Of a stretch of DNA of 64,000 nucleotides, positions 3,980 to 42,111 are shown in pieces. The position numbers and the translations under genes were made by a program. The notes under the pieces were generated by a model, which was not told the origin of the DNA, made no database searches, and was given only the letters and a program-made list of their open reading frames with translations. Positions within the stretch are counted from its first letter, which is position 1, and every line of letters starts with the position of its first letter. Source of the DNA: Oopsacas minuta (Eukaryota; Animalia; Porifera); contig JAKMXF010000334.1 in NCBI GenBank assembly GCA_024704765.1, forward strand, positions 124,001 through 188,000, in the 5' to 3' direction.

Positions 3980-4015
<36 letters not shown>

Positions 4016-8634: not shown

Positions 8635-10308
8635 TTGATGGCTACAGTCGTTACTGAAAAGGATATCTCAACTGAATTAGGTGGGAAAGAGAGTATTGGG
8701 GTAGGTCAATACACAAAATTGGGCCTTCCCAGGACATATGAACGGAATATTTATTGGAGTCGTGAGCCAAGTCCTCTTTCAGCAGATGACCAACCAAATA
8801 TAACCCAAAATGATTTATCAGCATCGCTTTCCCTCGGGTTCCCTACCCCAAAATGGGATCAATGTGAACATGAACGTTTCGAGTATTTCTGCGATATTTA
8901 CCTGGCAGTAATAGCTACCTTGGTATTAGCTTCATTTAAGTTGACTTTACTTATACCTCTTGACAAAGGGATGTCTCTATACGATCATCTTGCTAGGATA
9001 TATCCTAATACAGTTAGTTGGCCAGCAATTGTTGTAAACGGTATTGTAATATCTGTAGGATACGTTTACATAATTTCAATCTGGTTGAATCAAATAAGAG
9101 TTATCTATCTCTATCCAATGTTGGATAAATTTGTTGTTTGGTTGAATCTTGGTATCCTTGCCTCTCTGACATTCCTACCAATTGCATCTCTACTATATGG
9201 TGTAGAATCAGATGCAATTGTTACTGGATTTTTCTGCTTTTTCGTTGCTCTAGCTGGTATATTTCAATGTACTCACATCATTTATGTGTATATCTACAAT
9301 TATTATGAAAGTTTTCGTGATGGGACCCATGAGAATTCGAATTTCATAGTTTTGTTCATACAGCTACATGCAACGCTAGATATTCCAATTCGGGTCATTC
9401 TTGGATATGCATTATGGTTTATACCATCAGTTGGGAATAGTTTTCTGTTTATTGTATACCTAATAGCCATAATTTCTCCATTTGATTCCGTCATTCTCGA
9501 GAAAATATTCATTTACACTCAGAAGAAAACGAAGCGCATTGAGCGAATAGTTTCATACTTACAACATTACAAGAGAAAGTTAAGTAATGAAAGATTCATG
9601 CATTTTACCGATGGAGTATTTGCATTAATAAGCGCTATGCTAATAATAGATACTATTACAGTTTTTTCCAAAGAGTCTTTAGCTGTGATTAACTTTACAC
9701 AAAATTTCACTGAGATTGATCTCGTGCCAATTCTCCTAAAACTTCATGCGAATTATTTCTATAGTTTTGTATGGGCCATGTGTGTCCTTTGTACCTTTTG
9801 GATTGTCAGTTATAACATGTTCTATCGCGTCAAGGTAATAAATAGAATGGTGCTTTTTCTGAAATTTTTCGGTCTCTTCTTGGCGAATTTTATCCCTCAA
9901 TGTGCCTTTATACTGGGAAAATATGGTAGTAAAGAAAGTTATTATGATAGACATATGGCAGTTGTATTATCCTTATCGCTTGTGATTGCAATAGGAATTG
10001 TGCAATTAATTGGATGGTCCTATTTTAAATTCTTTTCCAAGACACTCTCATCGGAAAGAAATAGTGTAGCGAAAGATATTAAGATGGTTTTGATGATCAT
10101 TACATTACCATCATTGTCTTTCATTCTAATGATAATCGAGCTATTCTCTGTCAATAGCATCACCCTGCTTAAGTTGTTTATAATATTCCTAGTGCAGGTA
10201 CCGATCCTAGCATTAGTTGAGACATTACCAAACCTGTGTCGTTTCATTGGTATATGTTACGATAAACATGGCGACAAGGTTACTGGGGTATTCTATACTA
10301 GAAGCTAA
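8635..10308 (+). CDS. TMEM175: Two-repeat TMEM175-family endolysosomal K+/H+ channel, intronless, 557 aa
   Basis: Two homologous multi-TM halves, each opening with the RxxxFSD-type signature (RFEYFCDIYLAVIAT; RFMHFTDGVFALISAMLIID), followed by WxxH/Y-type helices and LNLxxLxxxxFLP-like segments. Confidence 0.88.
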   Translation: MMATVVTEKDISTELGGKESIGVGQYTKLGLPRTYERNIYWSREPSPLSADDQPNITQNDLSASLSLGFPTPKWDQCEHERFEYFCDIYLAVIATLVLASFKLTLLIPLDKGMSLYDHLARIYPNTVSWPAIVVNGIVISVGYVYIISIWLNQIRVIYLYPMLDKFVVWLNLGILASLTFLPIASLLYGVESDAIVTGFFCFFVALAGIFQCTHIIYVYIYNYYESFRDGTHENSNFIVLFIQLHATLDIPIRVILGYALWFIPSVGNSFLFIVYLIAIISPFDSVILEKIFIYTQKKTKRIERIVSYLQHYKRKLSNERFMHFTDGVFALISAMLIIDTITVFSKESLAVINFTQNFTEIDLVPILLKLHANYFYSFVWAMCVLCTFWIVSYNMFYRVKVINRMVLFLKFFGLFLANFIPQCAFILGKYGSKESYYDRHMAVVLSLSLVIAIGIVQLIGWSYFKFFSKTLSSERNSVAKDIKMVLMIITLPSLSFILMIIELFSVNSITLLKLFIIFLVQVPILALVETLPNLCRFIGICYDKHGDKVTGVFYTRS

Positions 10309-13992: not shown

Positions 13993-15957
13993 ATGGCTAC
14001 TGAAATTCCATATGATGACGAGGAATTGGATCCTTTAATTAATTCCATAGAAAATCTACTGATTAGAACTGCGAGAGAAGATCCGATTCCATTCAAAAAG
14101 AATACTTTTAGACCTTTCATATTTTTCGGACAAAGAATTCCCAAACTACACAGACCAGGTCTCTATCTACATCTTATTATTGTTTGTTTACAATACTTTT
14201 TCTTTATAAACACTCAGGTAATTATAGACTTAGCTCTAGAAAAGAATTTCAAATATGTATTTCAAAACGATTTCTCTAAACCACTCCTTTCTTCTGCTTC
14301 GTATCTACTCATTCCGTTTATCGTATATTTCTGTGATCGTCAAATGATTCGTAGATATAATCTCGTACTTTCTTCGATATTTATGGCTTTCGTCGCAAGC
14401 TGTATTCTTCTGATTTTGCTGTTACTCAAAATTGAAGAAGACAACTTAGATAATATTATTACAGGTTATGAGCATTCACAAGTTTCTGATATCAAATATT
14501 TCATACAGTATATTGGGTACATTTTCTGTGTGCTGAGTTACATAATGTTCTCGCTTAGTTATGCCCTTTCCTATCCGTTTACAATAACATTTGGACTGGA
14601 TATACTTCACGGAACACAATACGAGACAATATTACTATATTTCCCGTTATTTTACATATCGAAGGAAGTAGGCACTTCTTTCGCTTATCTTGTATACGTT
14701 AGAATAGTGAAGGAGGATCCATATTATCATTGTACACTTACAACTTTCGTTATCTTAATCGCATTGATACTGACATTATTTGGGAGGGTATTTGGATATT
14801 TTCAAGACTCTGCTATTGTTCCAAACAATTTCTCATTCAGTAAAGGTTTCAGAATACTTTTCACAGCTTTTAAACTCAAATTCTTTCACAGAAAAAAAGC
14901 AGAATTTCATTCACTAATGTTACACACAGCCAGAAAACGAGAATATGATGATCCCCACTCATTAGTTGATAAAACTCTAGCAATGATCAAAATTAATTTC
15001 ACTCTTATACTCTTGATGCCATTGCTTGGTTCTTATCAAATTCTTTACCAACTATTCCCCAAACAAGCCTACTTTCTGAGCTTTATACCATTTCCAATCA
15101 TTTTCAATTCTAATAATGATTACTACTGTGGGAATACCAATTTCTTCCTTTCTTATTGGTTCATTAATCCTCTTACTATAGTCATTGTAGGACCATTTAT
15201 CGAATATTTCTTTAACGATATCATATTTGATAAATTCAGGCCTGGATTGCCATGCTGGATCAACTGTATTTCCCTCAGAATTGCCTTCATCAGGAAGAAT
15301 GTAGCATACCAGTTTCGTCAAAGATTGTATAAATATTTTTCATTGGTTGATCCTATTCTGAAACGAGTTTTCTGGGGACTACCATTTGGCTTACTCAGTG
15401 CAATCTGTGCTCTTACAGTTGAAGTTTTCCGTATCAAATATGATATAGAATTGAAATGTAAAGGTGATACATACTCTCCTGCATCTATCATACCTCTAAT
15501 TAGTCAAATCCCTCAGTACTTTTTCTCTGGAATTCTTGAAGCAATCTCTGCAATAGGTCTACTACAATACATCTATCATCTCTGTAGTAATCAGTTCCAT
15601 AGCTCAATGAAAGGGTTCTTTTTCTCATTATTCTACTTCTATTATGGTGTAGCTGGTGTTATATCGAATATTTTCAATTTTACTTTCGATCAACTCTGTT
15701 ACAATCATTGTAACACAAATATTGTTCCAGAAAATGGATTTGCACCAATTTCTACTAATACTACTGATAGCTGGTGTTTGGTGGATAACACAGATTGTAA
15801 AACTTCTATACTTCCAAATGCTTGGGTGATTTGGGTGATAGTAATAGTTTTGTACTTATTCATGATTCCAATGTTCTACATATTCTCGCATCGAAATCAT
15901 TGGGAGAAGATAAGAGAAGAGAGAATGTTTTCAGAAGTGAGCCTTGAAACAGCTTGA
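13993..15957 (+). CDS. Divergent SLC15/POT (PTR2)-family MFS transporter, intronless, 654 aa (copy A)
   Basis: About 12 hydrophobic segments. QIPQYFFSGILEAISAIGLLQYIY...SSMKGFFFSLF matches the SLC15 TM10-11 signature; FINPLTIVIVGP and LKRVFWGLPFGLLSAICALTVE match SLC15 TM8-9. Confidence 0.8.
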   Translation: MATEIPYDDEELDPLINSIENLLIRTAREDPIPFKKNTFRPFIFFGQRIPKLHRPGLYLHLIIVCLQYFFFINTQVIIDLALEKNFKYVFQNDFSKPLLSSASYLLIPFIVYFCDRQMIRRYNLVLSSIFMAFVASCILLILLLLKIEEDNLDNIITGYEHSQVSDIKYFIQYIGYIFCVLSYIMFSLSYALSYPFTITFGLDILHGTQYETILLYFPLFYISKEVGTSFAYLVYVRIVKEDPYYHCTLTTFVILIALILTLFGRVFGYFQDSAIVPNNFSFSKGFRILFTAFKLKFFHRKKAEFHSLMLHTARKREYDDPHSLVDKTLAMIKINFTLILLMPLLGSYQILYQLFPKQAYFLSFIPFPIIFNSNNDYYCGNTNFFLSYWFINPLTIVIVGPFIEYFFNDIIFDKFRPGLPCWINCISLRIAFIRKNVAYQFRQRLYKYFSLVDPILKRVFWGLPFGLLSAICALTVEVFRIKYDIELKCKGDTYSPASIIPLISQIPQYFFSGILEAISAIGLLQYIYHLCSNQFHSSMKGFFFSLFYFYYGVAGVISNIFNFTFDQLCYNHCNTNIVPENGFAPISTNTTDSWCLVDNTDCKTSILPNAWVIWVIVIVLYLFMIPMFYIFSHRNHWEKIREERMFSEVSLETA

Positions 15958-16639: not shown

Positions 16640-17287
16640 TTAATAATATTGTGGCAAATTCATTTCCTGTTTAATTCTTTTCGGGTTTCTTTCATCTTCA
16701 CAAGCGTAATTGTAATTTTTCAGTCGTTTACCTTGAGACAGAACTCTATCATCAATATCCTCAATTTCCCCTCGAATATTTCTCAATTCTTTCTCGCAAA
16801 GTTGAATTTTATCATTCTGCTTACAAAATTCGTTAAAATCCATTTTATTTTCCTCGACAGATTTTAAGATTCCAAAAAGTTTGTCGACAATATTTCGATT
16901 TTTTCGCTCAAATTCCTTTTCATTTCCTTTAATTCTGTCTAATATAAATCGAATATTTCTCTCATTCTTCAGAATTCCAGATTTCTGCCCTGATATCTCC
17001 CTAATATCTTCATCACAAATCTCTACATATTCAATTACGTCACTAATCCTATTCACGACATTTATATATTTCGTATTTAATAGTCTATTCTGTCTTTCTA
17101 ATTCTGTAATTCTGGAACTTTGATCTTCAATTGTCGCGCTAATTAGGTCAATATGTTTGTGGAGATGTTCCTGTTTGTGTTGAGCAAGTTCCTTTCTATT
17201 CAATCCAAATATATCACAGCCAAATCTGACATAAGGACATCCCAGTCGAATTGCTCCATTTTCTGTGAACGAAACTATTCCACCCAT
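16640..17287 (-). CDS. TRAF-type zinc-finger remnant plus coiled coil, no MATH domain, 215 aa
   Basis: CPYVRFGC...RKELAQHKQEHLHKHIDL resembles the last zinc finger and linker of TRAF proteins; long heptad-rich region follows. Confidence 0.6.
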   Translation of the reverse strand: MGGIVSFTENGAIRLGCPYVRFGCDIFGLNRKELAQHKQEHLHKHIDLISATIEDQSSRITELERQNRLLNTKYINVVNRISDVIEYVEICDEDIREISGQKSGILKNERNIRFILDRIKGNEKEFERKNRNIVDKLFGILKSVEENKMDFNEFCKQNDKIQLCEKELRNIRGEIEDIDDRVLSQGKRLKNYNYACEDERNPKRIKQEMNLPQYY

Positions 17288-17882: not shown

Positions 17883-19834
17883 TCACGATTCTTGCAAAAA
17901 CGTTCTTTCTTCTCTTATCTTCTCCCAATGATTTCGATGCGAGAATATGTAGAACATTGGAATCATGAATAAGTACAAAACTATTACTATCACCCAAATC
18001 ACCCAAGCATTTGGAAGTATAGAAGTTTTACAATCTGTGTTATCCACCAAACACCAGCTATCAATAGTATTAGTAGAAATTGGTGCAAATCCATTTTCTG
18101 GAACCAAATTTTTGTCGCAATGATTGGAACAAAGTTGATCGAAAGTAAAATTGAAAATATTCGATATAACACCAGCTACACCATAATAGAAGTAGAATAA
18201 TGAGAAAAAGAACCCTTTCATTGAGCTATGGAACTGATTACTACAGAGATGATAGATGTATTGTAGTAGACCTATTGCAGAGATTGCTTCAAGAATTCCA
18301 GAGAAAAAGTACTGAGGGATTTGACTAATTAGAGGTATGATAGATGCAGGAGAGTATGTATCACCTTTACATTTCAATTCTATATCATATTTGATACGGA
18401 AAACTTCAACTGTAAGAGCACAGATTGCACTGAGTAAGCCAAATGGTAGTCCCCAGAAAACTCGTTTCAGAATAGGATCAACCAATGAAAAATATTTATA
18501 CAATCTTTGACGAAACTGGTATGCTACATTCTTCCTGATGAAGGCAATTCTGAGGGAAATACAGTTGATCCAGCATGGCAATCCAGGCCTGAATTTATCA
18601 AATATGATATCGTTAAAGAAATATTCGATAAATGGTCCTACAATGACTATAGTAAGAGGATTAATGAACCAATAAGAAAAGAAGAAATTGGTATTCCGAC
18701 AGTAGTAATCATTATTAGAATTGAAAATGATTGGAAATGGTAGAAAGCTTAGAAAGTAGGCTTGTTTGGGGAATAGTTGGTAAAGAATTTGATAAGAACC
18801 AAGCAATGGTATCAAGAGTATAAGAGTGAAATTAATTTTGATCATTGCTAGAGTTTTATCAACTAATGAGTGGGGGTCATCATATTCTCGTTTTCTGGCT
18901 GTGTGTAACATTAGTGAATGAAATTCTGCTTTTTTTCTGTGAAAGAATTTGAGTTTAAAAGCTGTGAAAAGTATTCTGAAACCTTTACTGAATGAGAAAT
19001 TGTTTGGAACAATAGCGAGTCTTGAAAATATCCAAATACTCTCCCAAATAATGTCAGTATCAATGCGATTAAGATAACGAAAGTTGTAAGTGTACAATGA
19101 TAATATGGAACCTCCTCCACTATTCTAACGTATACAAGATAAGCGAAAGCAGCGCCTACGTTCTTCGATATGTAAAATAACGGGAAATATAGTAATAATG
19201 TCTCGTATTGTGTTCCGTGAAGTATATCCAGTCCAAATGTTATTGTAAACGGATAGGAAAGGGCATAACTAAGCGAGAACATTATGTAACTCAGCACACA
19301 GAAAATGTACCCAATATACTGTATGAAATATTTGATATCAGAAACTTGTGAATGCTCATAACCTGTAATAATATTATCTAAGTTGTCTTCTTCAATTTTG
19401 AGTAACAGCAAAATCAGAAGAATACAGCTTGCGACGAAAGCCATAAATATCGAAGAAAGTACGAGATTATATCTACGAATCATTTGACGATCACAGAAAT
19501 ATACGATAAACGGAATGAGTAGATACGAAACAGAAGAAAGGAGTGGTTTAGAGAAATCGTTTTGAAATACATATTTGAAATTCTTTTCTAGAGCTAAGTC
19601 TATAATTTCCTGAGTGTTTATAAAGAAAAAGTATTGTAAACAAACAATAATAAGATGTAGATAGAGACCTGGTCTGTGTAGTTTGGGAATTCTTTGTCCG
19701 AAAAATATGAAAGGTCTAAAAGTATTCTTTTTGAATGGAATCGGATCTTCTCTCGCAGTTCTAATCAGTAGATTTTCTATGGAATTAATTAAAGGATCCA
19801 ATTCCTCGTCATCATATGGAATTTCAGTAGCCAT
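17883..19834 (-). pseudogene. SLC15/POT-like copy B, inverted duplicate of copy A with a 1-bp deletion frameshift at 19016/19017
   Basis: The two ORF-track pieces (18911-19834 and 17883-19097) reassemble to a near-identical protein. Copy A reads GACTCTGCTATT, copy B GACTCGCTATT. Could also be an assembly error. Confidence 0.75.
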
Positions 19835-25517: not shown

Positions 25518-28500
25518 ATGATGGATATTAATGCACAGAGTATGGTAAGAGCCGTTTCTATAAAGATTGCTAGAATTGAGGTCACAGACTTTGCAAGGAA
25601 TATTGGAGATTTTAATAATGTGAGTTATGATAATCAATGAATGTATTATTACGATAGACTACGGTTAATAGGGTCACGTCTGGCGGGACGCACCAGGTTA
25701 TTTGACCCAATTTAGCTGAATATAATGTATTGACCGATTTCCAGGCTAAATCAGGCCATATAATTTTTTCCATGGGAAAATATTGGTTTCCTCAAATTCC
25801 ACTAGGTATCAGAGAACAGAACATACATCACAAAATCGTCAAACACGTTTAATCGGCCACCCTATTAAGAGGATTCTACTGTAGATTTATGGTTTATACC
25901 TTTACTTCCAAATTAGGTATATATTCTCAAGTCTGTATGGTCTGGAGAACCAACGAAGTTAATTCTAAGATCATACTACCAGCTATGGCATTATCAGGTT
26001 AGAAATTTATTTCACTGAATTATTCCATATGATTTCTAATAGATGAAATATATATATATATATATACAATTGACATACGCTATCTCAAAAAATATGTTCG
26101 AAATAACGAATGCACCATTAGCACATAGTCAGCCCGCGGGCCTTGCGGTTCGAAATGCCTTTCGGTTCTTCTCTCAACAGGCCGACACTACGTACTACTC
26201 AATAGATGTCTGGTAATTCAATACGACTTGGTAATTTTATTCATCTATAGCTTCATTTTATCCATTTTTTGGGGATCTGATAATATACGTACAAATATTG
26301 TTATTATGCGAGTTGCTCTATGTATGTTCAACTTAGTGTTTGCTGGAGAAACACATTAAAAAGACACCAAGCCTGAAGGAAGTCCTCCCTCCTCTACCAG
26401 GTAATTACACTCATACAATTCTTACTCGTATTTTTCAATATAACTACGCTCCGCGAAGAAACCAAACTAACCAATTACCATTAGAATAGAACTATCCATC
26501 TCACTTTTTTCTTCATTCGTGGTAGTACTTATGATATTTAGCTGGGTGGGGATAATTCATTTCATACGAGGAAACCTGTGCACATAGATAATTTTAACCG
26601 ATAACTGCTGGGAAAATGTGTGATTTTATGACGTCAAAAGGTGCTAAAATCTCTTGATAATGATAGGTATCTATGAAATTTAGATTGGTTCATATTATTT
26701 CCTATTCATTCATTAAAACTACGTCTTAAATATGAATATTTTCAGGTATCAGGATAAATCCTTAACTGGAAAGTATCATAATTCCCCAAATCACATCCAA
26801 TCCAATGTATTGCTAGCTAAAGAAATATATTAAATTAATTGTTTATCTCCCTTTACAATCTGGAAAATCCAGATTTTTTGGAGAAACCCAGCAACAGCCA
26901 CGTGTACATGTTCTACTATCACATCAGCATATTAAAGTATTACGTTGCTAATTAGTATATCAAATAGATTAATCTGACATCAAAAACAAGAAAAAGTTCA
27001 TTTATTTGTTACGCCCCTTGTTAATTATCTACCCACAAGAGATAAAATGCTGTTTTCTGATAACACGAGACAGACAGAGTTAATTTTAGTCAACAATTAT
27101 GAATGTGAATTGTTAGGAAACAGGACAGATTGTATTATACGGCCCTTACGAACCAAAGCAGTAAATAGATTTCTGCTTTTGTTATATTTGTTCCCTCATA
27201 TCAGGGGCTTGGCGGTCACGACTCAAATTAGTGCAGGATCAATATATTCCAGTTCAAACAGTGCCATCCTAGGAGAGTGCCTGCAAAAAAAAGTGCCGTT
27301 GTCATATTGTAATCCTCCCCCTCGGGAAGAATACTATGTAATATTCTTCCCAGGGGGTAGTAAAGTTTCCCCTATTCAAAAATTTGATAATTCTTACTAC
27401 AGTTGAGTCTCTTTAATACGTACACCAGAGGACTGCGAATATTCCTACTTATCCGGAGCACGTATTATCCGAACTAATTTACATTGAAAAGGCATCGAAG
27501 GGGACTGATAAAGTGTACAAATTTGTACTCCTTATCCGTGTCCGTATTAACGAGACTCTACTGTAATTGTATTTTGCTAATCACTGGAGATTATAGCCTT
27601 TGTTTCCTAATAGTTGTAAATATTTCTACTTTTGATATTTGATTATAATTCCTTAGAGGATGGTTTGTCGTATTTTATGATTTATTCCTGTCTTCGGATT
27701 TTTTCGCATTAGATCTGCAAGATGGGTGCTTCTCTTGATCTCCATTCTAATTAGATGCAGATTTAATAGCTATTTAGTACTTAATGTGACTAGTAATAGT
27801 GCAAATTGGGATAGGGGGAATACTATGTACAGTAGAGTCTCATTAATACATACTCCGGACAGGGATGATGCCAGGAAATCCCCGACAAGGGGGCTTAGGT
27901 CCCTAATGGGGGGTCTAAATTTGTGATATAAATCCTATACTACACTGTTTTACTAGATAGAATTCATATTCTTGTCAAATTTCTTCCAATTCCTTCCCCG
28001 ACGGGGGGCTGTAACCCTCCGCCCCGCCCCCCCTAGCGCCACCCCTGACTCCAGATAAGGAGAACGTATTTCCCCTGGTGTACGTATTAACGAGAGTCTA
28101 CTGTAAGGCATTTTCCCCCCGAGAAAATACTATATGGGAAATTTACTATATCACATCGGTCTACAAATTCTGGATAATGTCCTACCTCAGACATGCAAAA
28201 TCCAATATTTGTATTTGTTTCTCGTTTTCCTCGTACAAGATTGCAGCATTGATATTGACTAGGGGTTTATAGGGCCTTTTGTTTTCTAGAAAAATCACTC
28301 AGTCATGTGTGCATACTCGTTAGAAATCAGAATCTTTTAATCAATTATATTACATACGTATAACATAATATACTGACAATCAATAATCACGAACAACTCA
28401 AAAATATTTACAACATTATAATAATCTGTATAACACGTATATACTGGTTATGCCCTATTCTTAATAACACATACCATTACGATTCGGAATATAAAAGTAA

Positions 28501-31500
28501 TGATTAAATTCATTAATTCTAAACACAATTGTTCGTTCTCTCTCTCACAAATTTCATGACCTCTCTCAGCTATGGAGGGATCATCCAGTTCCACGATCCG
28601 CTCCTCTGCTCCTACGTTGCAACGCGCCAATTTTGACTGAATCAGCTTTGTCTTCTTGATTAGCTTGCGGTGCGAACTGGACTTATGCGTGTAATCAGGT
28701 GGATGTCCTAATTCTATGTCTCTTATTGGATCTCCGTAAAATGGTGTGATTAGCAAACGACAATCTCTATTGCTATATCTTGTTGACATGTTATTCTGTG
28801 TTGTTATTTGTTTATATTAAGGGGAAAGGCCCTTTGCACTAGTATTTATACCCTCTCTTAAGTACTACATCCTTTACACTACAGATACGTTTTCAGTAAA
28901 GTACCTACTAAATGTGTTAATCATTAGCAACTACCTCGTGGTGTCATTGTGTTGTGTTGTCTCCAAGTGCTTACAAATAAGTACTCCTTTAATTTTGAAG
29001 CCAAGAAAATTTGATCTCAACGATAATTTATATTATTTGAGGTTTTCACTAGTTCCATTGTTGCATCACTTTATCCAACGGACTCCAACCTCCACTGAAA
29101 CTCATAAGCTTCATCCTGCCAAATTGTGAATATTTCAGATAAAATACTGAAGTTCTTTAAAACAGAACGAATGGGTTCCTCTCTCTGTGGCGGAACTAGG
29201 GGGTCACACAGCATTTGCCTTGATTTGAAAATCCTGGCTCGGCTCCGTCATTGTCAGATCATGGGACCCCCGATCCTGGTTCCTCTACCCTCTCACACAT
29301 ATTTAGGGAATGTATTGCGTATCAATTCAAGTAAAGAATTACAATCTGTATTTTAATATTTCCATTCTATTATTAGTTGTAGAAGACACAGATCATATGG
29401 CTATCATAGAGCAATATCTGATGGTAAGATTATACACAAATATGGTTATGTAAACTTCTTTCATTACGAAATAAATACCGGTTATACGGAAGTGATTTAT
29501 TACATCCCTCTAGCTCGCAAGTTGCAAGTAGTTTATTTTACTCATATATGACTATATGACTCTGAGCCCTAGATTCATTTAGTCATAGATTCCTCAGATT
29601 CTGAGGTCTGTCATGCCACAACTGGTCCTGGACCTGTGATAGTCGACCATAACTGTTCTCTTAAATAAGTTATGGTTGACTCTATCTGGTTCTATTCGTC
29701 CTTATCTCCTGGTTGTATCTGATAACGATATCTAGCCTTTTATCGAATCAGTAAATAATATTCGATTGTTATGTGTGTTTTGTCCACAATTTGAGCTGTA
29801 GTGATGATATTTACCTTGGATTACTTTCAGGCCTGCTCCTCTATGTTGTCTGGATGGTTAACCTCCTGGTTGTCAAACAAGTTATTGCATTCTAACCATT
29901 TAGAGCGTTAAAGGTCCCACTTCGAAAAATGGAATAGCGGAAATTTGCTCAGGGGCCTGCAATTGATCAAAAATACTTAGCAATAAAGCCAAATCTTAAC
30001 TTAGAATCCTTAGATATGCATTGATAAACTTAAAATAACCAAATTCCAATCGATCATACAATTACAGTAATCTTCTCTGTTCTATTTTAATAAATTTCCT
30101 TTTCTATTTATTTCTATAATTTAGAGTTTAGTTCTGATGGTACGTAACGGTTCTTCAATGTCAGCAATGATAAGGAATCTGTTTCTACCCTGGGATTCTG
30201 ATGAAATAACTAAACAGTAAGTAATGTGCAAATCCTGTGCTGTAAATGTGATACTGGTACAGTTATCTGAACTCTTGACATTTGTATGATACTGCTATCA
30301 GGGAATCCCCTGCTATCATATACTAAACCTGAAATAAAGTTTATTCGATTCCCTAGAGCTATGAATGTGAATATAGTTTCCTGCTCAAACGTAATTTGAT
30401 TTACCCGTCTCGTTATATGCTAAATTATTATAGAAGAGTTGTGAGCAATGATATGGTGCCTAACTACTTCTAATTCATAACATTCATTTTAATAGTGTCC
30501 TTATTCGGATAAGATGGACAGTGGAACCTGCATAAACCGACACCTCTATAATCCGAAAGTGTTTCTAATAGCTTCCTACTATTTGCTAAACCGACTATTT
30601 TCATGCCCAGCGAGTATCTGTTTCCGCAGGTTCCACTGTAGTAAATTTGGTTGCCGAATGGGTAAGTCTTATCTGAGTTCTACTGTAACTTATTTGTGTC
30701 TCAATTATCTATGATCGGTACAATAGGACTTGTTATGCTCTATAGAAGAGTAGTTCGCATTGCTTTACTTATTTTTCTAGGGAATATCTGTCTGATAGCT
30801 CAAAATCTCCCACTAAATCAGATCGAGAAGTTGTTGGATTAAAGAGTGAGTATTTTTTGGTATTTATTTATTTGTTTGTCTTTGTTAGTTTGTCTCTTTG
30901 TGGTTTTGAGTTATTTGGGTAGAATTCGGATAAGACGTAATATTGTACTTTCTTGCCCATTGTATCCGATAATAGCAAGTCTTTAAGTCTATTTAAGATT
31001 TCAATAATCTTCTCAAAAAGTTTTCAATTCCTCCTCCAAGCACTATCATTACTGAATTTGATTATAAAACACAACCTGTGGTTAATCAAACATGAATGTA
31101 ACTTTGAAATCACTCAATTAACTATCTAATGCATTCCTGACATTACTCAGTAGAAATTATTCTAACACAACAGCAATATTATTATACATCAAAGTGTCTC
31201 TATTTATGGAGAATAATCTCTTATAAATAAGAAGATTGAAGTTGATAGTCCATACATATTTCTTTGTTAGAATCTCCAAACATTTCCACATCCCTCACCG
31301 ATTTTTGGATTCTCTGTTTCATGGCTGATTCTGAATCTTTCGATTCAGCATCTAATGCTTCTCTTTCTTCAGAAGAAGAAATAGACAGAATATTCTCCTC
31401 AGTTCAATGGGAAATAAGTAATACTTTTGATCAGTTACTTCTTGCAGTAACGAAGAGGCGAGATTTATTGTTAGATAAATTGAATAATATTCGGACAAAT

Positions 31501-34500
31501 TACGAGAGAAAGACTAAACTATTGAATGACGATATTCAAGGACTAACTTCTATGAAGGATAGTATTCTAGGGACAAACCATCGTGATTCTCTCAAACTAT
31601 CTTCTTTAGCAAGGAAAAACTGTCTTGAAGAAGTTGAATCCGGGATGAGAGAGTCGAGTTCTCCTTTAGCATCACCCGTTCCTGAATTCAACTGCGAATT
31701 TGATAGTTTACTCGCGAAAATCGCGGAATTGGGATCACTTGCTGACTGCAGAGGTATGTATGATGGAAAGAACAGACCGTATAGAGCAATTGGCAAGCAG
31801 GGTCATGGTAAAAATGAATTCCACAATCCAAGAAGTGTATTCTTGGACGAAAAACGGAATGAACTTTACATTGTAGATGCTGGTAATGCTAGAATAAAAA
31901 TACTGAATATTCCATATTTTGAATTCAAGCATGAATTCGGCAAGAAATATTTGTTGTCTCCATGGGGTATCACTATATGGGAAGATTTCATTTTTGTAAC
32001 AGATGAATCTTTGAATCAACTTTTAAAATTCTCATTGTCTCGGTTCAAACTTGTTTCATGTTTGGGCTGTAATGATGACGAATTTTTTAATGATCCACGC
32101 GGTATATGCACTGGAAACAATGGCGATATCTACGTAGCGTATTTAACCACAAATCGAGTTGCAGTGTTCACCCCAGAATTAGAATTCAAACAGTACATCG
32201 GAGAAACTCAACTCTACCATCCACATGATGTGAAATTCTCAACTCAGATATTATTCGTATTAGACGAATCTCCCTACTGTATCCACTTGTATAACACAAA
32301 TGGACACGAATTGTATCGAGTGGTGAAGCGTGGCGTAAACAGTGATGTTCTACACGCTATCTTCTTCTATCTGGACTCATTCAATAATATATTTATCAGT
32401 GATGTGCATGTGAATTCTATCAAAGTATTCTCAAAATCTGGTCTGCTTATCCATGATATTAAGGAAGCTGTGAATACTCCTAAGGGCCTAGCACTCACTA
32501 GTAAGAATCAACTGATCTCTTGTAGTGGCTCTTATCATAGAATAGAAATATACTGATAGAGATTATTAAGATAATATTTATTTTATTGTATTTCTATTAC
32601 TTTATTTATACTGAAAATTCTATACATTTATTATACGCGTATATTTTATCGAAAAAATGGAAATTTTTTGCTAATTTTATCCAGATTATTCATAAATAGG
32701 ATTAATTCACTTAATTATCGTTATAACATTTCAAAATATTGACAAACAGACAGACAACTAACCTCGAATAGTACCAGAGGTGTTTACTATTATAGGCCAA
32801 GGTAGTGGGCAGAGATTTGGCTCCCTAACAGTACATTTTGATACACAGATACCAATCTCACTGATATTTTATAAGGAATCTCCCGGGTTGATGAGACTCC
32901 AGTTGGCTTTTGTGAAATATGAGGCGCTCTTAACATGTTCCCCATATGAAAAACTATTCTAGGTAATGCGTTGTATGTCAAGATAGTATTTATAATAACC
33001 TTATTTGTCTAGATTGGTTTAAAGTTGTCGGTAACTTTAGTAGTGATGACATAGAGCTGTTGAATGTATATGAAGGAGATCTTGTTCAGAACTTAGGCAG
33101 TGTACAACAAGGTATTCAGGTAGAACTTAATATTATTCTAATACTGAATTACACTCAGTCAATTCCCATTTTACTAACGCTTAGAAATATTGCATAACTC
33201 TACAAGGCAGTTTTGCATGCAAATTGAAAGCTAAGGGGAAAATGCATATTTACTTTTAATCAAATTTGGGACGCCAACAATGCCCCGTTTCACCTTTCTG
33301 CCAATTCCCTGATTGTGAAGGTCCACAATACTTGTTATTCATAGTACATAATTATATATTAACACAGTATATTACATTTTACATCATTAATGATGACTTA
33401 ACATAATAGGATGGTGTTTCTGTAAACGAGAACAAGAGTTAGGGAAATTACCACATGCTATTCTTACTCCATGTACTCTAACACTTGACCAAATAGAAAC
33501 TGAGCGTATTCGGTTATTAGAAATCAGAGATTTCAAATCTGTAACCAGCTATCCTTATCCTTCTAACCAATTCCCTGCACCTGAATGTGACTACGTAGAA
33601 ATGAATCCTCTTCTCTTTTCTTCTGAGGTAGCTAATAGTTCCCCGAGGAAACCTCCTCCCTTCAGACCTATAAGAGACAAGCTACCTACAGTTTCTATGA
33701 GTAATAAGAGCAAGCAGTCTATTCCAAATTCTCCTAAGTCACTTCCTAATAATCTTACTGTTTCAGCATCAGCATCTCCTATAACAGCTAATAGTAAAGT
33801 TGGTTAGTTTATTTCTCATATTATTACTCTCATTCAGTTTAATCTAGGATAAATTACAGGCACATTGGATGACGGTTATAAGAACTCTCTTAGGAGGGAG
33901 GAGTAATACATGTACTTAGAACCGATATAAAATATATATAGCAATATACAAGAAACATTTCCAGGGGATGGTGTTACTTGTATATCGAAGTGCTAAGATC
34001 CGCTCTTTAATTCGTTATTGGCAAATATATGCAAGGTTTCATTTAGGGGGCATTCGCTTCCCCCTTACATAGCCAAGACTCTAGTTTGTCCCCCCTCTTG
34101 TCTAAATGTTTGGATGAAACATTGTTAGGTTCAGGGGTGGTGAAAATGTCATTAACGACAGTTGTAAATTTTAATTGCTATTCTCTATACAGCACTTGTG
34201 TCCTCACCTGTAGCAGAAGATAAGGCTATAACATCTCCTGTATGTAACAAATATGTAATCAGTGATTTTGAAGATACATTGACAGAGGATACACCATCAC
34301 CAACAGGATCTAATTCACCTGTTACACCTACTGTTATTAATAAGCTATCATTACACAAATCTAGATCTAAATCTCTACTCATTGGTCATAAGAAGTCATC
34401 TCCTACAACAGAGGTTAGGATATATACAAATACACATTAATCGGGTCGCTTGTAAAGGTTTCAAGCTCGGCCAAGGCCGGGTTTGGGCTTCTTCTGCTTG

Positions 34501-37500
34501 CCTTGGGGCCGGCAGGCCTCTGACTTGTATACTTTCAGCCATGTGGCCCGGTGCGAACTCTAGTCACTTGACCACAGGAACAGGTTACAGATCTATGCTA
34601 CTAGTGTTAAATTAATCTGTTTAATCCGGCCAAATGCTACTTTCCGCTTAATTCAAAATCCAATTGAGCCAAAGTAATTCGGTTTTGTGTCTAGTAACTC
34701 TCATTATGTCAAAATATCGAGCCAAGTTAACATTATCTCGAACCATCCCTAATAATTAATACATTACTAGCATCGAGGTAATCTCCATATTCGGTAAATA
34801 TTGGATCTTCGTTTTGTCGACTAACTGCACTGAAATTTCTACCAACCTGCCAATATCAGTAGGCCATCGATTATCCGCCACCTCGGTTGTCCGAACAGCT
34901 GGAAGAACCTTTAGTTTGTAAACATGGTTGCAATTTATGTGGTCATTTTACGTACATATTGGCATAAATATACTATCAAATATTCAAAATATCATCTCTT
35001 CATATATCCCCGAACAGTGAATTTTATTTAGGAAAATACACTATTAGTTATCCGAACGCCAAACTTGGAAGTGTATAACGTAGGTGTGGATGATCGAAGG
35101 GGTACATAACTCTTGTAGAAATACACTGAATACTGGTATAGCAAATGCTGTAAGACAATTTTCTAATGAATATATGCAAGGATAGTGAAAATGCTATGTG
35201 ACGAGAAACATGTAAAACGGCTATGGAATATTCAAATAACAGGGCTTTTCACAAGTCAGCAGATTCTATATCGAGTCATCAAGTCACTCATGACTCGCGA
35301 TATATGCTGGATGACTCGAGTCATCGGGCCGCTCATGAGCTATGAGATGTTCTTGCCTCAATCATCTGCGAGGCATTTCAATGACTTAAAAAGCCCTGAA
35401 TATTTTCAATTTAATACTTAATCTTCTAGAAGAAAGCACCTCCATTCTGTAATCCTGAGACACGAGTCAGCAAGATAGATTACTATGCTAAGAGTTCTGT
35501 GAGAGCATGGGAGGAAGTCAAGAGAGCTCAGTTACAAGATCAAACTATAAAGCTTACTTGTGTTATACACAAAGATACAGGTATGATATTACAGTAGATA
35601 TTTGATATTTGATACCACGTGTATTATGGCGATTGGAGCTGCTGACCCATTTTTTTGGAAAACTTATGAAAAGTGGGTCACCCATTGTCGATAATGGCTG
35701 ACCCACTTTTCATATTTCCCGACGATCCTATTATTCTTGTGTATTATTAATTTACGTGAATTTTTCCTTCATTTTACGTATTCTATCAATTATTTCCTAA
35801 TACAATTATCCTAAAATCTGGCCATATCTAACAGAGTTGGAATCTGGTTCACTTTTCAGATCTGAGCCCAAACCCAATTCCAACTCAGTTTTAGATATCA
35901 AATATTTGTTCTATTCATTCCAAATTACATGCAGTGTAATCTGGATAACCAAGAAGCTATCACAACTAATGTTAAGCTTGGAATTTATTGACGTGTATTT
36001 GTCAATTTCGATTCTACCTTAAGTCTTGAGACTTGAGTGGAAAACTTTAATTGAGAGCGAGAGAACAATATAAATATATTGATTCAATGTAATATTCATT
36101 GTTTAGTTCGTCCTGGCTGTGCTCTGTGTGCACGTTCCCAATGGATGGCAGCAGAGAATGACAATGAGGAGATATACCAGTGTATAGAGCCACATAGATC
36201 TGCTCAGCAAACACAGCTCATAGTAGATCAAGGAGATCTTGTTAAAGTTATACAGAAGAATAAAAATGGATGGTGGGATGTCAGGTAGCACTATTGATAA
36301 TTATTTCAATATAATTGAGACTGCGGAGTCTTAACCAATTAAATATGCTACTTTGATGTTTGTACAATTTCGACTAATACGCGGGGATTTTCGATATTCC
36401 GTGTTAGATAACTCTAATTGAGAATTCATAATTTCCAATTGTCGCGATTTTCGGCAATGTTGAGCGTCATTTCCCGAAGCGACAGAAAGCCTAATGCTCC
36501 ACAACCTGTCAGTATATTTTCTTCATCCTGGTTAGCATGTATGAAAATTTGAGATATCAAATTCGCTATTATCTCCTCAATTTCTATTTATAGCTTTTTT
36601 CTTTTCAATATAGTATAGTGCGGGACAAAAGCAAAGCTATCAAGAGTATACCTGCTACTAAATTATCAAGAGAAGTTAGTTTAATTTTATTCATTTGGTC
36701 ATCTATATCGTATCCCCCTAATAGTTTACTCGGCATTGATTGTTATAACGTCCATTTTCGAGGTTATAAATTCTCATTTCTCATCTCCTATCACCTGCAC
36801 AGGTCCTAAAATTCTGAGAGTTTCTTTGCGCATAATTCCAAAATCGAGGAAAATTGAAACAACGAAAAATCGGAGTTTAGAGGACAAATATCAAAGCGAA
36901 TTTTCCAAACGAAATATCGGGGCGAAGAATGTTGTAATTTACAGGATTTGAATATACTTTCCAAAATCTGAAAACTCTATTGATGCTCTGAATACTTTAT
37001 ACATACACCATCTAATTATATTACACGCGTTTCAGTCATTGATCCAGGGTTTGTAATGGGTATATATGTGTAGCCACCTAACTTAACTCCCTTATTCAAA
37101 TACAGTCAACTCCCGTAATATCGAACACGGATATATCGATATCTGTTATCGGTCAAAGTAACATATATTTCCATTGGTTATATCGAAATAATCATCGCGA
37201 TCCCTTGAGCTTCGTTATAACGGAAGTTGACACTTGACTGAATTCATAATTCACAATGTTGGTTTGGGGTTACACCAATCAAGAATCATGTTTAAGTGTA
37301 ACTCGGATAAGATAGATAGACAATACTTTAATGGATATCTTATCATTATCTAGCCTCACCCACATCCCTCAAAGTCAAAACCATTCGTTCTGCAAAGGTT
37401 TGTTATAAAATACAAGACATTTTGATCACGTAGGGATAAGAATAAGTGACCATAACTACTACGAATACGCGTTAGTCAATTACTAAAAATCTCAAAAATC

Positions 37501-40234
37501 TACCAGATTATTCGCAAGAGAATTACGTCACAAAGCAATGAAACACAAATAGATCATGGTATAACAACTTCAGTGTAACCACGTCAATATAAACACCAAC
37601 AGATGGTCAAAATTTCGTTGCATTATCCAGAGTTCGTATTAACCTGAGGCTAAGTAGTGCAAATTGAATAACCAGTAAAAGGACGATTTTATGTAAATAT
37701 TTGTTCGTTTCAACCGGAAATTCTTATTAACCTGTCGTGTTCGTATTAACGAGGATCCACTTTATAATAATACTGTATTATCAAAAGGAGGAACACTTCA
37801 CTTGAGACGTTAGAACATGACTACTACGATTTGACAGAGGGAGTTGAACAGAAAATATCTGCTACCGAATCAGTTAACAGTTTTCCTCCTGACCTATCCT
37901 CTGGACCTCAACCCTACCTCTCTCCTATCCAGAATGCACACCCACCTCCCCCTGTACCCACTAGGATCGATTCATCACCTCACCTATCCGTAAGCGAGCT
38001 CTCTCGTACCAAAACAACTCCAACTAAGTTGAAATTACCTAACACGGAATCAGAATCAGAAGATCAACAAAAATGTAAAACTCTATCACCTGCAGACACA
38101 AGCCAGAAATGCACACCAAATTCTGATAAAAATTCAAGATTTTTCCTTATGGAATCTCTCATCTATCAATCTTCTAAGTATAGAAGAGAATCAGAATCTG
38201 TAGAGAAGAGCGGACAACTTGGGCTGTTTAGTAAATTTTCCACTCTCTCTGGAAGTAATGATAATACTAAGCAGAAGAATTATAGTTTTGTTTCTTATAT
38301 TTCAGAAGGAAATAAAGTAGATGTTCCTCCTACTAAGACTAAACTGGAGAGAATGAGTTCTGGCGGATCGAGGAAAAACCTTTCTCAAGGTTGGTGCAGT
38401 TATAGAATTACGGTAGAACTCGGTTAATAGTGAGATGAAATCCAATATATTTCCCTAATTTCGGGTCGGTTCGGGTTCTGAATCGATCTCATTTATTTAC
38501 CATTCATTTGAATACAATCCCTATTCGTATAAGACGTATACTCGGATAGTACGTACTAATTTTTACTTCCCGAAGAGGGATGTCTTATCAGAGTTCTACT
38601 TTAATTAATTGAGATGTCCGCTACTAATTCGTGACTTGAGTTTTATATATTTCGATCGACATATCTGGAGTACAGCTTGCGTTAGTATTCTAACCAATTA
38701 CTTTGATTATTTTTGGTAATTTCTAGGATCAGTTAAATATCCCAAATGTGTGAAACTCTGAATAATCACCGAATATGTGTGATATTCGAAATACCAGCTG
38801 TAAGTGCAAATTTGCAGCCCAACATTTACACATTTTCAATGTTCATGTTTGATTAATGGGATTATTAAATTTTGTAACGTTAATGTACGGATATTGTTCA
38901 TGACAATTGGGCATCTCCCTAAAGGAGATACTTCTATTAAATCACTAAATTATACTTGAAAGACTAATGGAGGATTTATTTAACATAATTATAGAAGAGA
39001 AGGCTGCATGGTCAACACTTGGGAAACAGAATGGATTCTTCGGATCTTTATCCAAGGAGAGAGCTGAAGAATTGCTAAAACAGGTTTGTAGATATGAGAT
39101 TATTTCATCGTGTGAGGGAATACTCGCAGAAACAACAAATTCTTTTGTTCTTAGTGTTGAATGAAGAAATCTTTGTTCATTTAATTATATCTCAACAAAA
39201 CAAGCGATCTTTACATAAAGAACGAAAGTCAAAAATACCTTTTTGTAATTCTATTGATAATCTATTAATCAGTAACTTATTAGATTATGTCTAAACACTG
39301 TTCTTTTGAGAAGATTGACAATACTATACGTGTATGCATGTACGTATTTATATATTTGATTGTTTGTAGAATGCAGTTGATGGAGAGTATCTTATCCGAG
39401 CTAGTTCAACAAAAGAAGATTCATTTGTATTATGTGTTTATCATGGGACAAAGTATGTTATTCTATTCTATTATCTATTCAGAGTGTATTTGCATTTTCA
39501 TCTTTGCCGCCTTAAATCTGGGTATGCAGTTAGAGAAAACAGTAGAACCTCTATAAGTGAGGGAGGTCGGGACAGCGAATCTCCTGATAACCTCCCATTC
39601 CCCATTTATACTTTCTAATGTAAAGTCTTGAGCTTTTTGAGTCAAAATGCATAGCCACTTCCTCTAACGACTGTTTTTCAAAGATATTTGATTATTATAA
39701 TGTGCCTTGAGGTTGTTGTGGGTGAATATGCTAAGTGTGTTTATTCCATTAATTCATTATGCGTTTAGCACTTGGTTTACCTAGTTTCCGCGAAAACTTA
39801 TTTTTTAATCTCTTTGAGATAATTACACATTCAAGTTATTCTGTAAGTATTCGGTTAATTCAGTAGCTCTCGTTATAACTAAGCGCTCAGGACAGCAGTT
39901 TCATTCCATTATAAGCGGTATTTCGTTGTGTTCTAAGTAAAATCAATTACTTTCAAGCTGTAGTGGGTAAAGAATAACTTCGTTATAACTGGAGTTTACT
40001 GTATTGTGATTCTGCAATAAAGTTGCTTAATCCTAAAATATAACGTTTTGTAGTGTCCATCGGTATCTTATACAATTCAAAGACGGTAAATTCGTAACAG
40101 GAGAACCTCCTCTCAGCTTCACAGATTTCTCATCTGTTGTCAGTCACTATAAACTCAATGCATTAGAGGTTACAATAGGCAAAGAAGATATTTTACTAAA
40201 ACAACCTTTATTAATGAAACGACAACAAAAATGA
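25518..40234 (+). CDS. Multi-exon PX-SH3-SH3-SH2 adaptor/scaffold. Supported exons: 25518-25619, 25917-25997, 26337-26400, from 27042 (end uncertain), 29053-29125, 29377-29423, 33013-33111, 33410-33802, 34193-34413, 35430-35580, 36107-36284, 36614-36674, 37814-38389, 38995-39083, 39370-39452, 40054-40234; further small exons are likely near 35830-35970 and 37300-37600
   Basis: PX: VYILKSVWSGEPTKLILRSYYQLWHYQ-CLLEKHIKK...LPPLP-DKMLF...PLLHHFI. SH3-1: WFKVVGNFSSDDIELLNVYEGDLVQ...GWCFCKREQELGKLPHAIL. SH3-2: IYQCIEPHRSAQQTQLIVDQGDLVKVIQKNKNGWWDV...IPATKL. SH2: GFFGSLSKERAEELLKQ-NAVDGEYLIRASS...FVLCVY...VHRYLI...VVSHY. Most junctions are phase-compatible; the exact model is partly uncertain. Confidence 0.72.
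26594..26646. repeat. Dispersed ~53-bp repeat containing TGACGTCA, with an inverted copy at 40827-40880
   Basis: TTAACCGATAACTGCTGGGAAAATGTGTGATTTTATGACGTCAAAAGGTGCTA matches the reverse complement of 40827-40880 with a few differences; probably a transposon end. Confidence 0.75.
27400..27563. mobile_element. MITE, CAGT(A/T)GAGTCTC-TIR family
   Basis: TA|CAGTTGAGTCTCTTTAATACG...CGTATTAACGAGACTCTACTG|TA. Confidence 0.8.
27830..28103. mobile_element. MITE of the same family, with a GC-rich internal segment
   Basis: TA|CAGTAGAGTCTCATTAATAC...GTATTAACGAGAGTCTACTG|TA. Confidence 0.8.
31321..32556 (+). CDS. Coiled-coil + NHL-repeat (TRIM2/3-like C-terminus, no RING/B-box) protein, intronless, 411 aa from the first ATG
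   Basis: N-terminal coiled coil (FDQLLLAVTKRRDLLLDKL); NHL blades FHNPRSV...LYIVDAGNARIKI, LLSPWGI, FNDPRGI...DIYVA, LYHPHDVKF, VNTPKGLAL. The ORF track starts at an upstream TTG. Confidence 0.88.
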   Translation: MADSESFDSASNASLSSEEEIDRIFSSVQWEISNTFDQLLLAVTKRRDLLLDKLNNIRTNYERKTKLLNDDIQGLTSMKDSILGTNHRDSLKLSSLARKNCLEEVESGMRESSSPLASPVPEFNCEFDSLLAKIAELGSLADCRGMYDGKNRPYRAIGKQGHGKNEFHNPRSVFLDEKRNELYIVDAGNARIKILNIPYFEFKHEFGKKYLLSPWGITIWEDFIFVTDESLNQLLKFSLSRFKLVSCLGCNDDEFFNDPRGICTGNNGDIYVAYLTTNRVAVFTPELEFKQYIGETQLYHPHDVKFSTQILFVLDESPYCIHLYNTNGHELYRVVKRGVNSDVLHAIFFYLDSFNNIFISDVHVNSIKVFSKSGLLIHDIKEAVNTPKGLALTSKNQLISCSGSYHRIEIY

Positions 40235-41076: not shown

Positions 41077-42111
41077 ATGAAGCGAGCAGAAGAAACACAC
41101 TCCCTCGTATCATCATCTCAGGATTTTACAGATGCTATTATGCCAAAAGAACCTCACACACGAGGTAGTATTAAACCTGTAACCACAATGCATAGCAACA
41201 ATTTAATATACTCAACAGACTTCTGTTCTCCTGATACAGTAGCTGCAGGTGATGCTAAAGGGTTCATAGATCTATTCCAGTTTAATAATTGTGGTAATAC
41301 ATTAAAGCTGTACTCGCTTTCTAACAATACTTACCAGCCTATAACTGCTATCAAATTCCGACCTGGCTCTCTGGAAGATATCAGTAATATTCTACTGAGC
41401 ACATCTTCAAATGGTGACGTCATACATTGGCACGTACCTAGCAAATCAGTGTTGAGTTGTATAAGGGAAGAAAGGCAGGTGTTGAGCTGTGCATACTCAT
41501 CAGATGGTCTATCCTTCGCTACTTGCGGGAGTGATTCTAAGATTATCGTGTATGACGAAGAGAAACTTTGTCCAATAAGTACACTTGATCATTTTGGAAA
41601 ATCAACAGAAATGTCTGGTCACATTTTCCGTGTGTTTTCAGTTAAATATTATCCTGACATGTCTAATCTGTTAGCTACAAGTGGATGGGATGGTTCAATA
41701 CATTTCTGGGATATGAGAGTTTCCCAGCAGTCTGTAATGCATCTAGCAGGACCGTTAGTTTGTGCAGACTCTATAGCATTCAATCCTACAGGCGACAGCA
41801 TTGTTACCGGATCTTTCCGTAAAGAAAATCCCTTACAAGTATGGTCAGTTAGAGACGGTAGCAATTCTTCTAATTTTAACTCATGCGCTATAAACTCACA
41901 ACTGTATGCAGCTACATGGCTAGACAGCAACCTGATCGCTTGTGGAGGCACGAATAAATCCGCGGTTTATCTCGTACGTTATCCAGATGAATATGTGGAG
42001 GGTGAGGCTTTAAATTTCGCAGAAGGTATTTACTGTTTGGGCTCCTCGAGTAAACTCAAGAATTTCTGTGTAGGTAGTGGTTCATCTCTTTACATGTACT
42101 CTTACAAATAA
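41077..42111 (+). CDS. WD40-repeat protein, intronless, 344 aa
   Basis: Repeats such as VLSCAYSSDGLSFATCGSDSKIIVYD, GHIFRVFSVKY...LLATSGWDGSIHFWD and IVTGSFRKENPLQVWS; subfamily not assigned. Confidence 0.9.
   Translation: MKRAEETHSLVSSSQDFTDAIMPKEPHTRGSIKPVTTMHSNNLIYSTDFCSPDTVAAGDAKGFIDLFQFNNCGNTLKLYSLSNNTYQPITAIKFRPGSLEDISNILLSTSSNGDVIHWHVPSKSVLSCIREERQVLSCAYSSDGLSFATCGSDSKIIVYDEEKLCPISTLDHFGKSTEMSGHIFRVFSVKYYPDMSNLLATSGWDGSIHFWDMRVSQQSVMHLAGPLVCADSIAFNPTGDSIVTGSFRKENPLQVWSVRDGSNSSNFNSCAINSQLYAATWLDSNLIACGGTNKSAVYLVRYPDEYVEGEALNFAEGIYCLGSSSKLKNFCVGSGSSLYMYSYK

Follow-up and report, generated by a model that had tools for sequence, protein, structure and literature searches.

The window analysed here is a 64,000-nucleotide stretch of AT-rich eukaryotic DNA from the glass sponge Oopsacas minuta (contig JAKMXF010000334.1:124001-188000), and the gene under study lies on its + strand at 25518-40234 (positions are those of the window unless a contig or locus is named). 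We consider it probable that this is one gene of 17 exons, encoding an adaptor in which a PX-like region is followed by an SH3 domain, a second SH3 domain and a C-terminal SH2 domain, and that it diverged quickly from its paralogue, an intronless gene on contig C310 of the same genome. We refer to it below as the scaffold gene.

Probable exon structure of the scaffold gene

The gene model was built from stop-free segments and splice sites on the + strand and was then corrected with RNA and comparative data. In an exon-by-exon phase check it yielded 850 codons (850 amino acids) with no in-frame stop, an AG acceptor on every exon but the first and a GT donor on every exon but the last; the gene ends placed by the original prediction, an ATG at 25518 and a TGA at 40232-40234, were exactly confirmed by this check. 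Exons 4b (30125-30216) and 4c (30781-30845) were identified from RNA joints, exon 8 (35430-35580) via an RNA loose end, exon 10 (36614-36674) by reading the sequence, and exon 10b (37354-37397, 44 nt) by a three-species scan, which resolved a frame conflict between exons 10 and 11.

None of the runs recorded as RNA contains the stretch. RNA-seq formed part of the O. minuta genome project (PMC10280926), and one of four genome-project runs (X4), which has no recorded library type, nevertheless behaves like RNA: its depth tracks the scaffold exons and a nested NHL gene described below, and GT..AG joints were present in this run alone. X4 contigs were examined over window 29300-35299. They show the spliced joints 29423>30125, 30216>30781, 30845>33013 (two contigs) and 33802>34193, and they join exons 3-4-4b-4c-5 and exons 6-7-8. 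A 131-letter loose end at 29375, just before the exon 4 start at 29377, reads the 3' end of exon 3 and would be long enough to extend into exon 2, and a loose end past 34413 reads the start of exon 8. X4 also carries ~10 single-base differences from the assembly and may derive from another individual.

Comparative data came from two other sponge-holobiont assemblies (species A and B), in which the loci lie on contigs of 620-650 kb. A representative-library search with a 218-aa linker exon returned three exon-sized open reading frames (ORFs), leading to the orthologous loci in these two species. We treat the three loci as orthologous because the gene that adjoins the scaffold gene downstream, an intronless WD40 gene (41077-42111, + strand), sits in the equal position in species A and B, where it is 71-73% identical. 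By tblastn of single window exons, the order in species A is kept for exons 2, 3, 4, 4b and 4c, the NHL gene, exons 5-8, exons 9-14 and the WD40 gene, and the order in species B is kept for exons 4-14; exons 2-3 gave no convincing match in species B. Of the 17 exons, 16 have a conserved counterpart in one or both of the other glass-sponge assemblies. Silent sites are saturated (proportion of synonymous differences, pS, 0.46-1.0) while the proportion of non-synonymous differences (pN) is 0.02-0.23, and the ratio of the corresponding rates (dN/dS) is 0.02-0.17 wherever dS could be computed, namely in the PX exons, exon 4c, SH3-1, exon 9 and the SH2 exons. On the strength of this substitution pattern, the scaffold exons are judged to be real coding exons in the stated frames. 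A pseudogene reading was rejected, given the lack of stops and the dN/dS range.

The N-terminal part of the protein is spread over six exons. Exon 1 (25518-25619, predicted) would supply the ATG and 34 codons with a putative first PX strand, and ends at a GTGAGT donor in phase 0. Exon 2 (25917-25997; 93% identical in species A) carries the predicted PX core, with RSY replacing the RR[YF] motif, and exon 3 (26337-26400; 86% identical in species A) a PX segment ending in LPPLP, a PxxP motif. The PX helix IIEQYLM is assigned to exon 4 (29377-29423; 93% identical in species A and 80% in species B), which the first of the RNA joints above connects to exon 4b. Exon 4b, with RNA joints on both sides and 80% identity in species A and B, would form the C-terminal end of the PX region (NLFLPWDSDE; FFSLWPDD in the paralogue), and exon 4c (81-95% identical in species A and B), bounded by the joints 30216>30781 and 30845>33013, links the PX region to the first SH3 domain (SH3-1).

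The N-terminal half of SH3-1 lies in exon 5 (33013-33111; 84% identical in species A and B), which in the full-length frame ends at an in-frame donor, and the C-terminal half (GWCFCK...GKLPHAILTP) opens exon 6 (33410-33802), where it is followed by a Ser/Pro linker. Exon 6 has 51-60% identity to its counterparts in species A and B, with pN of 0.09-0.12 against pS of 0.83-0.88, and is joined in RNA to exon 7 (34193-34413), a linker exon with 38-47% identity. The linker continues into exon 8, where a conserved segment (SKIDYYAKS...) is 56-82% identical in species A and B. Exon 9 (36107-36284), whose acceptor and junction Val codon are conserved, encodes the N-terminal two thirds of the second SH3 domain (SH3-2), and exon 10 its end (SIPATKLSRE), with splice sites and phase conserved in species A and B. 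The short exon 10b restores the frame, and in all three species it has equal length, AG/GT borders, equal phase and an Arg codon.

Exon 11 (37788-38389) encodes a Pro-rich linker with EHDYY[DE][LI] and PxxPx[RK] motifs; it is 45-46% identical to ORFs P0001 (species A) and P0002 (species B), and the changes just past its conserved acceptor are of the synonymous type. The SH2 domain occupies the last three exons. Exon 12 (38995-39083) holds its N-terminus and helix A (FFGSLSKERAEELL), the aligned stretch being 79% identical in species A and 49% in species B; exon 13 (39370-39452; 81-96% identical in species A and B) holds strands B-C with the phosphotyrosine-binding Arg of YLIRAS; and exon 14 (40054-40234; 72-79% identical in species A and B) runs from strand D to the C-terminus and the stop.

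Exon 5 has two GT donors at its 3' end, 8 nt apart. Donor 1 (33111|33112) ends the exon in frame, and donor 2 (at 33119) adds the 8 nt GTATTCAG, which together with the GT of donor 2 occupy 33112-33121; use of donor 2 is a frameshift. Purely synonymous differences between the three species set the reading frame of exon 6, and that frame needs donor 1. With donor 2, a stop follows after 10, 18 and 25 codons in the window species, species A and species B, respectively. The 12 nt that span both donors are identical in all three species, while the neighbouring intron sequence is unalignable (donor-pair positions are 33110-33121 in the window, ~9177-9188 in locus L005 and ~4000-4011 in locus L006). 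The pair may be a conserved alternative-donor switch, in which the choice of donor would decide between the full-length frame and a truncated message or one prone to nonsense-mediated decay (NMD).

The intronless NHL-repeat gene (31321-32556, + strand, 411 aa; Pfam NHL E 1.5e-15) lies within intron 6 (30846-33012), between exons 4c and 5. The RNA joint 30845>33013 skips it, separate X4 contigs cover it, and a same-strand NHL gene occupies the exon 4c-5 intron in all three species. Because the PX exons are spliced to the first SH3 exon across it, the NHL gene marks no boundary between two genes; it is a separate nested gene. In the relatives, NHL genes were located at L005 7464-8738 and at L006 2329-3555, 7774-8763, 10001-11233, 15160-16386 and 19067-20035, and species B has, besides its copy in the exon 4c-5 intron, four of these within its 18-kb exon 8-9 intron. 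The exon 8-9 intron of species A and B also contains an ORF of 386-402 aa with weak ankyrin-repeat matches (L001 5850-7058, + strand; L002 5651-6811, + strand), of which the window has no counterpart.

Elsewhere in the window, an Aha1-like ORF and an apparent ribosomal-protein exon, both named from their translations only, lie upstream of the scaffold gene. A 654-aa ORF with the look of a multi-pass membrane protein (13993-15957, + strand) has a near-identical inverted copy 2 kb away (17883-19834, - strand), which consists of two overlapping ORFs, apparently by frameshift, and a 215-aa coiled-coil ORF (16640-17287, - strand) lies between the two copies.

The intronless paralogue and the predicted domains of the window protein

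The paralogue, reached by both a genome-wide PX scan and a genome-wide SH2 scan, is an intronless 833-aa ORF in an 838-codon frame on contig C310 (780783-783284; L007:1784-4285). It contains a PX domain (48.7 bits), three SH3 domains and an SH2 domain (55 bits), and its residues 50-314 align in one stretch, covering PX and both SH3 domains, to residues 9-282 of human p47phox (E 1.6e-34). All PX basic residues are kept, and a tandem SH3 pair lies at residues 194-314. The NCBI model of this gene (P0008) has 557 aa, lacks the PX domain and is named "Cytoplasmic protein NCK1-like"; compared with the ORF, both model and name look incomplete. Five other assemblies contain orthologues, 826-866 aa long, that give an identical set of Pfam matches (PX, SH3, SH2). 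A single unbroken ORF thus holds the combination of PX, SH3 and SH2 domains, whatever splicing model is chosen for the window gene, and the window gene is no one-off. In Atlas, the clusters nearest to the whole paralogue were NCF1, SH3PXD2A/B and NOXO1, and those nearest to its SH3-SH2 tail were Nck (0.91, a lead only).

The window gene and the paralogue are collinear at ~25-30% identity. They share the order of PX, SH3 and C-terminal SH2 and a similar length (850 and 833 aa), and seven exon-wise hhalign matches to the paralogue family all fall in the correct order. They differ in that the paralogue is intronless, with a canonical PX domain, a tandem SH3 pair and a third SH3 domain, whereas the window gene has introns. 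We ran Pfam on single window exons with E values up to 1, which gave matches for SH3-2 and SH2 only. The SH2 domain is the firmest: exon 13 alone scores 25.4-25.9 bits against a PF00017 cut-off of 21, and the phosphotyrosine-binding Arg of YLIRAS is present, as stated earlier. Read from the sequence, the other pocket residues are present as well, namely the helix-A Arg (SKERAEE) and the strand-D His (VHRYLI), and species A and B keep all three. On either side of exon 13, exons 12 and 14 match the corresponding SH2 portions of the paralogue (exon 14, hhalign P 0.014). Weak PDB matches of exon 14 were to the SH2 domains of p85 and SHP2, and PDB searches with single exons were otherwise uninformative. 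Searches of the sponge's own genome with the SH2 and SH3-2 exons returned only the query exons themselves or chance-level matches.

For SH3-2, exon 9 scores 20.6-21.5 bits, just under the PF00018 cut-off of 22.9, and hhalign places it on the second SH3 of the paralogue (P 1e-5). SH3-1 gave no Pfam match from its single, intron-split exons; its C-terminal half matches the first SH3 of the paralogue (hhalign P 5.5e-4), is 84-100% conserved in the two other species and carries the pattern GW[WC]FC...P[AH][SA][FI]L, which we take to be like that of the p47phox SH3A. With the end of SH3-1 near residue 207 and the start of SH3-2 near residue 460, the Ser/Pro linker between them is ~250 residues long; a Pro-rich linker of ~230 residues separates SH3-2 from SH2. 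The two SH3 domains thus form no tandem pair, contrary to the original prediction, and because of the distance between them a super-SH3 of the type that binds p22phox is unlikely. Four linker motifs are conserved in the three species, PPPF[RK]P and DY[VM]EM in exon 6 and HDYY[DE][LI] and PxxPx[RK] in exon 11; the Pro-rich ones, PPPF[RK]P and PxxPx[RK], lie C-terminal to SH3-1 and SH3-2, respectively.

The PX region, apparently divergent, is the weakest of the domain calls. Exon 2 ranks first among 3889 six-frame window segments against a hidden Markov model (HMM) of p47/Tks-type PX domains (9.9 bits), and by hhalign it aligns with the PX core of the paralogue over 27/27 columns (P 2.8e-4), at the position of RR[YF]SxF. 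Exon 3 falls at the PxxP loop (hhalign P 0.058) and exon 4b at the PX C-terminus (P 0.14), which are weak matches in the correct order. We also compared the residues that contact lipid in canonical PX domains: the second Arg of RR[YF], the Lys/Arg after PxxP and the Arg at the start of helix 2. In the exon-wise alignment, judged by eye, these basic residues are not kept: RSY stands for RRY, an acidic VVEDTD follows LPPLP and ~14 residues are missing. The replacement holds in species A too. Since the canonical basic residues are replaced or missing, phosphoinositide binding of the canonical kind is doubtful for the window PX, and so is the membrane link that had been proposed for this protein.

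Taken domain by domain, the order first read from the sequence (PX, SH3, linker, SH3, linker, SH2) is present, with SH2 recognised by Pfam and SH3-2 just below its Pfam cut-off; for SH3-1 and PX the assignment comes from exon-wise profile matches only. That a Tks/p47phox-like module is joined to a C-terminal SH2 domain is supported by both the window gene and the paralogue.

Six-frame scans of the genome returned several related loci. At least two NOX-type loci were found, one of them a 579-codon frame with a NOX-type NAD-binding domain (C210:571826-572275), along with two p22phox homologues (C324:32680-33102 and 208779-209345), a Tks-type locus with PX and at least five SH3 domains (C33:191713-196224, - strand), a Nck-type ORF of 334 aa with three SH3 domains and an SH2 domain (C299:516488-517372, - strand) and Grb2-type SH3-SH2-SH3 ORFs; the labels Tks-type, Nck-type and Grb2-type denote domain matches only. 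Because the genome also holds the NOX and p22phox genes, the locus with PX and at least five SH3 domains and the ORF with three SH3 domains and SH2, the two PX-SH3-SH2 hybrids are, judging by these scans, additions to the ordinary set rather than replacements for it.

Alternative readings of the locus

Several observations weigh against a single gene with PX, SH3, SH3 and SH2 domains. Exon 1 is without conservation or RNA support, and the ~6 kb ahead of exon 2 in species A yielded no orthologue of it. In exon-wise comparison, the window SH2 ranks the SH2 of the paralogue third of 41 SH2 domains of the same genome. Word-index searches and Atlas gave no protein with PX and SH2 outside sponge assemblies, but at a limited sensitivity that leaves this restriction a weak point. 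At the N-terminus, Pfam gave no PX match exon by exon, a six-frame PF00787 scan of the genome was without a match in this contig, and a general PX HMM made from 19 PX-domain sequences of this genome was silent on every PX exon; the chained per-exon PX alignment reached a z of only 0.6-4.4 with a high null score, and among the PX exons only exon 2 is individually convincing. These failures, with the absence of the key basic residues, would fit an N-terminal region of 128 residues that is conserved but unrelated to PX, in front of an SH3-SH3-SH2 adaptor. We hold this to be improbable, given the first rank of exon 2 with the p47-type HMM and its hhalign match over the full exon, the placement of exon 3 (LPPLP) and exon 4b (FLPWDSD) at the expected PX positions in the correct order, and a total length and a position ahead of SH3 that match both the paralogue and p47phox. 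A further alternative, which we regard as slightly less likely still, divides the locus into two transcription units that are merely adjacent, exons 1-8 forming a PX-SH3 gene and exons 9-14 an SH3-SH2 adaptor of their own. The RNA contigs examined stop short of the junction 8>9, and this junction together with 9>10, 10>10b, 10b>11 and 11>14 has comparative support only. The exon 8-9 intron spans 11-18 kb in species A and B, where it holds NHL, ankyrin-like and other ORFs, some of them on the same strand, and it is because of these ORFs that we keep the two-unit alternative alive at low probability; exon 9 also has an in-frame Met nine residues ahead of SH3. Against it, the exon 8 donor (G|GT) and the exon 9 acceptor have equal phase in the three species and conservation ends and begins exactly there, and the codon split between the two exons is Val in all three (GTT/GTT/GTG). 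Ahead of the in-frame Met, 13 codons vary as coding sequence does, with 5 synonymous changes and 1 non-synonymous change relative to species A, and by this mostly synonymous pattern exon 9 is an internal exon. The exon 4c-5 intron likewise holds a same-strand gene and yet is spliced in RNA, and the paralogue has a matching overall architecture within a single ORF.

The remaining alternative concerns the product rather than the extent of the gene, and overlaps with our preferred explanation. The only exon 5-6 junction among the X4 rows listed is 33119|33410, which uses the frameshifting donor 2; it was read from loose ends at 33120 and 33408 (one contig, with agreement 1, at 33408). The sampled RNA contains an unproductive or truncated form. 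A less likely reading, though not a remote one, is that the sampled tissue mainly makes a short protein of PX and half an SH3 domain, or an NMD target, through donor 2; full-length scaffold would then be only a minor isoform or one made under certain conditions. The identity of the donor 2 surroundings in three species despite saturated silent divergence, and the stop within 10-25 codons in each of them, would agree with this. Contigs, however, drop minor variants, so that donor 1 may be used though unseen among the X4 rows listed, and strong purifying selection acts on exons 6-14 in a frame to which donor 1 alone leads. We retain as the probable reading one 17-exon gene whose full-length product is the PX-SH3-SH3-SH2 adaptor.

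Relation to known organisers and adaptors

p47phox, NOXO1 and Tks4/5 are organisers of NADPH oxidases and podosomes, and none was described with an SH2 domain in the literature searched; a survey of Phox organiser evolution (Kawahara and Lambeth 2007) never mentions SH2 (PMC2121648). With p47phox (NCF1) and NOXO1, the window protein shares a predicted N-terminal PX region of what looks like the same subtype, an SH3 domain with the GW[WC]FC...P[AH][SA][FI]L pattern and PxxP motifs in the PX region and the tail; it differs from them in having an SH2 domain, in the ~250 residues between its SH3 domains and in its replaced lipid-binding residues. With Tks4 and Tks5 (SH3PXD2B/A), it shares a predicted PX region ahead of more than one SH3 domain, with long Ser/Pro linkers between the SH3 domains that bear tyrosine and PxxP motifs, whereas the Tks proteins have 4-5 SH3 domains and no SH2. 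Nck1 and Nck2 also have SH3 domains followed by a C-terminal SH2, but in Nck there are three SH3 domains, no PX and ~380 aa, compared with two SH3 domains, a PX-like N-terminus and 850 aa here. The likeness to SLP-76/BLNK that had been suggested is limited to a Pro-rich, tyrosine-bearing linker ahead of a C-terminal SH2 domain: SLP-76 and BLNK are without PX or SH3, no search gave any sequence affinity to them, and the SH3-SH2 tail of the paralogue was most like Nck.

The window gene appears to be a new form of the p47phox-related family, so far found only in glass sponges. Word-index searches with the paralogue (as a single sequence, as an alignment and with its PX-SH3 region) returned only glass-sponge orthologues; Tks proteins of suitable length were also missed by these searches, so this is weak evidence of absence. 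Within that sensitivity, the original remark that no vertebrate protein is known to have the combination held, while the description of an early-animal adaptor reaches further than data from glass-sponge assemblies alone allow.

If the adaptor is made as predicted, its SH2 domain would dock the scaffold onto tyrosine-phosphorylated partners, and its SH3 domains and conserved PxxP motifs would recruit partners with proline motifs or bind one another, in assembly or auto-inhibition as in p47phox, NOXO1 and Tks/Tks4. The tyrosines of DY[VM]EM and HDYY[DE][LI] suggest that the protein itself is likely a kinase substrate and docking site. Since the window PX has apparently lost the canonical lipid-binding residues, this copy is probably now targeted by phosphotyrosine instead of phosphoinositides. 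The two copies may share out the work, the paralogue looking able to bind lipid and p22phox, the window copy having a degenerate PX and separated SH3 domains. All of these binding functions, and the role of the splice switch, we infer from sequence. We offer only tentatively the fuller account that an organiser module (PX plus SH3 domains) became fused to a Nck-like SH3-SH2 reader in glass sponges and that two paralogues have retained this fusion, that the targeting of the window copy moved from lipid to phosphotyrosine, and that its conserved frameshifting donor pair acts as an on/off switch.

Vertebrate organisers reach tyrosine-kinase signalling indirectly, by phosphorylation and separate SH2 adaptors such as Nck, and the vertebrate Nck SH2 binds phosphorylated Tks5. 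Were the fusion account true, the sponge scaffold would be a "Rosetta-stone" protein, in which one chain does what vertebrates do with Tks5 or p47phox plus Nck. A phosphotyrosine reader built into an organiser would be a natural experiment on pathway wiring and would suggest which partnerships are old. In these genomes, automatic annotation will probably split genes that have introns of 11-18 kb and same-strand nested genes. The scaffold is a testable candidate for the control of NOX or of actin remodelling in the syncytial tissue of glass sponges.

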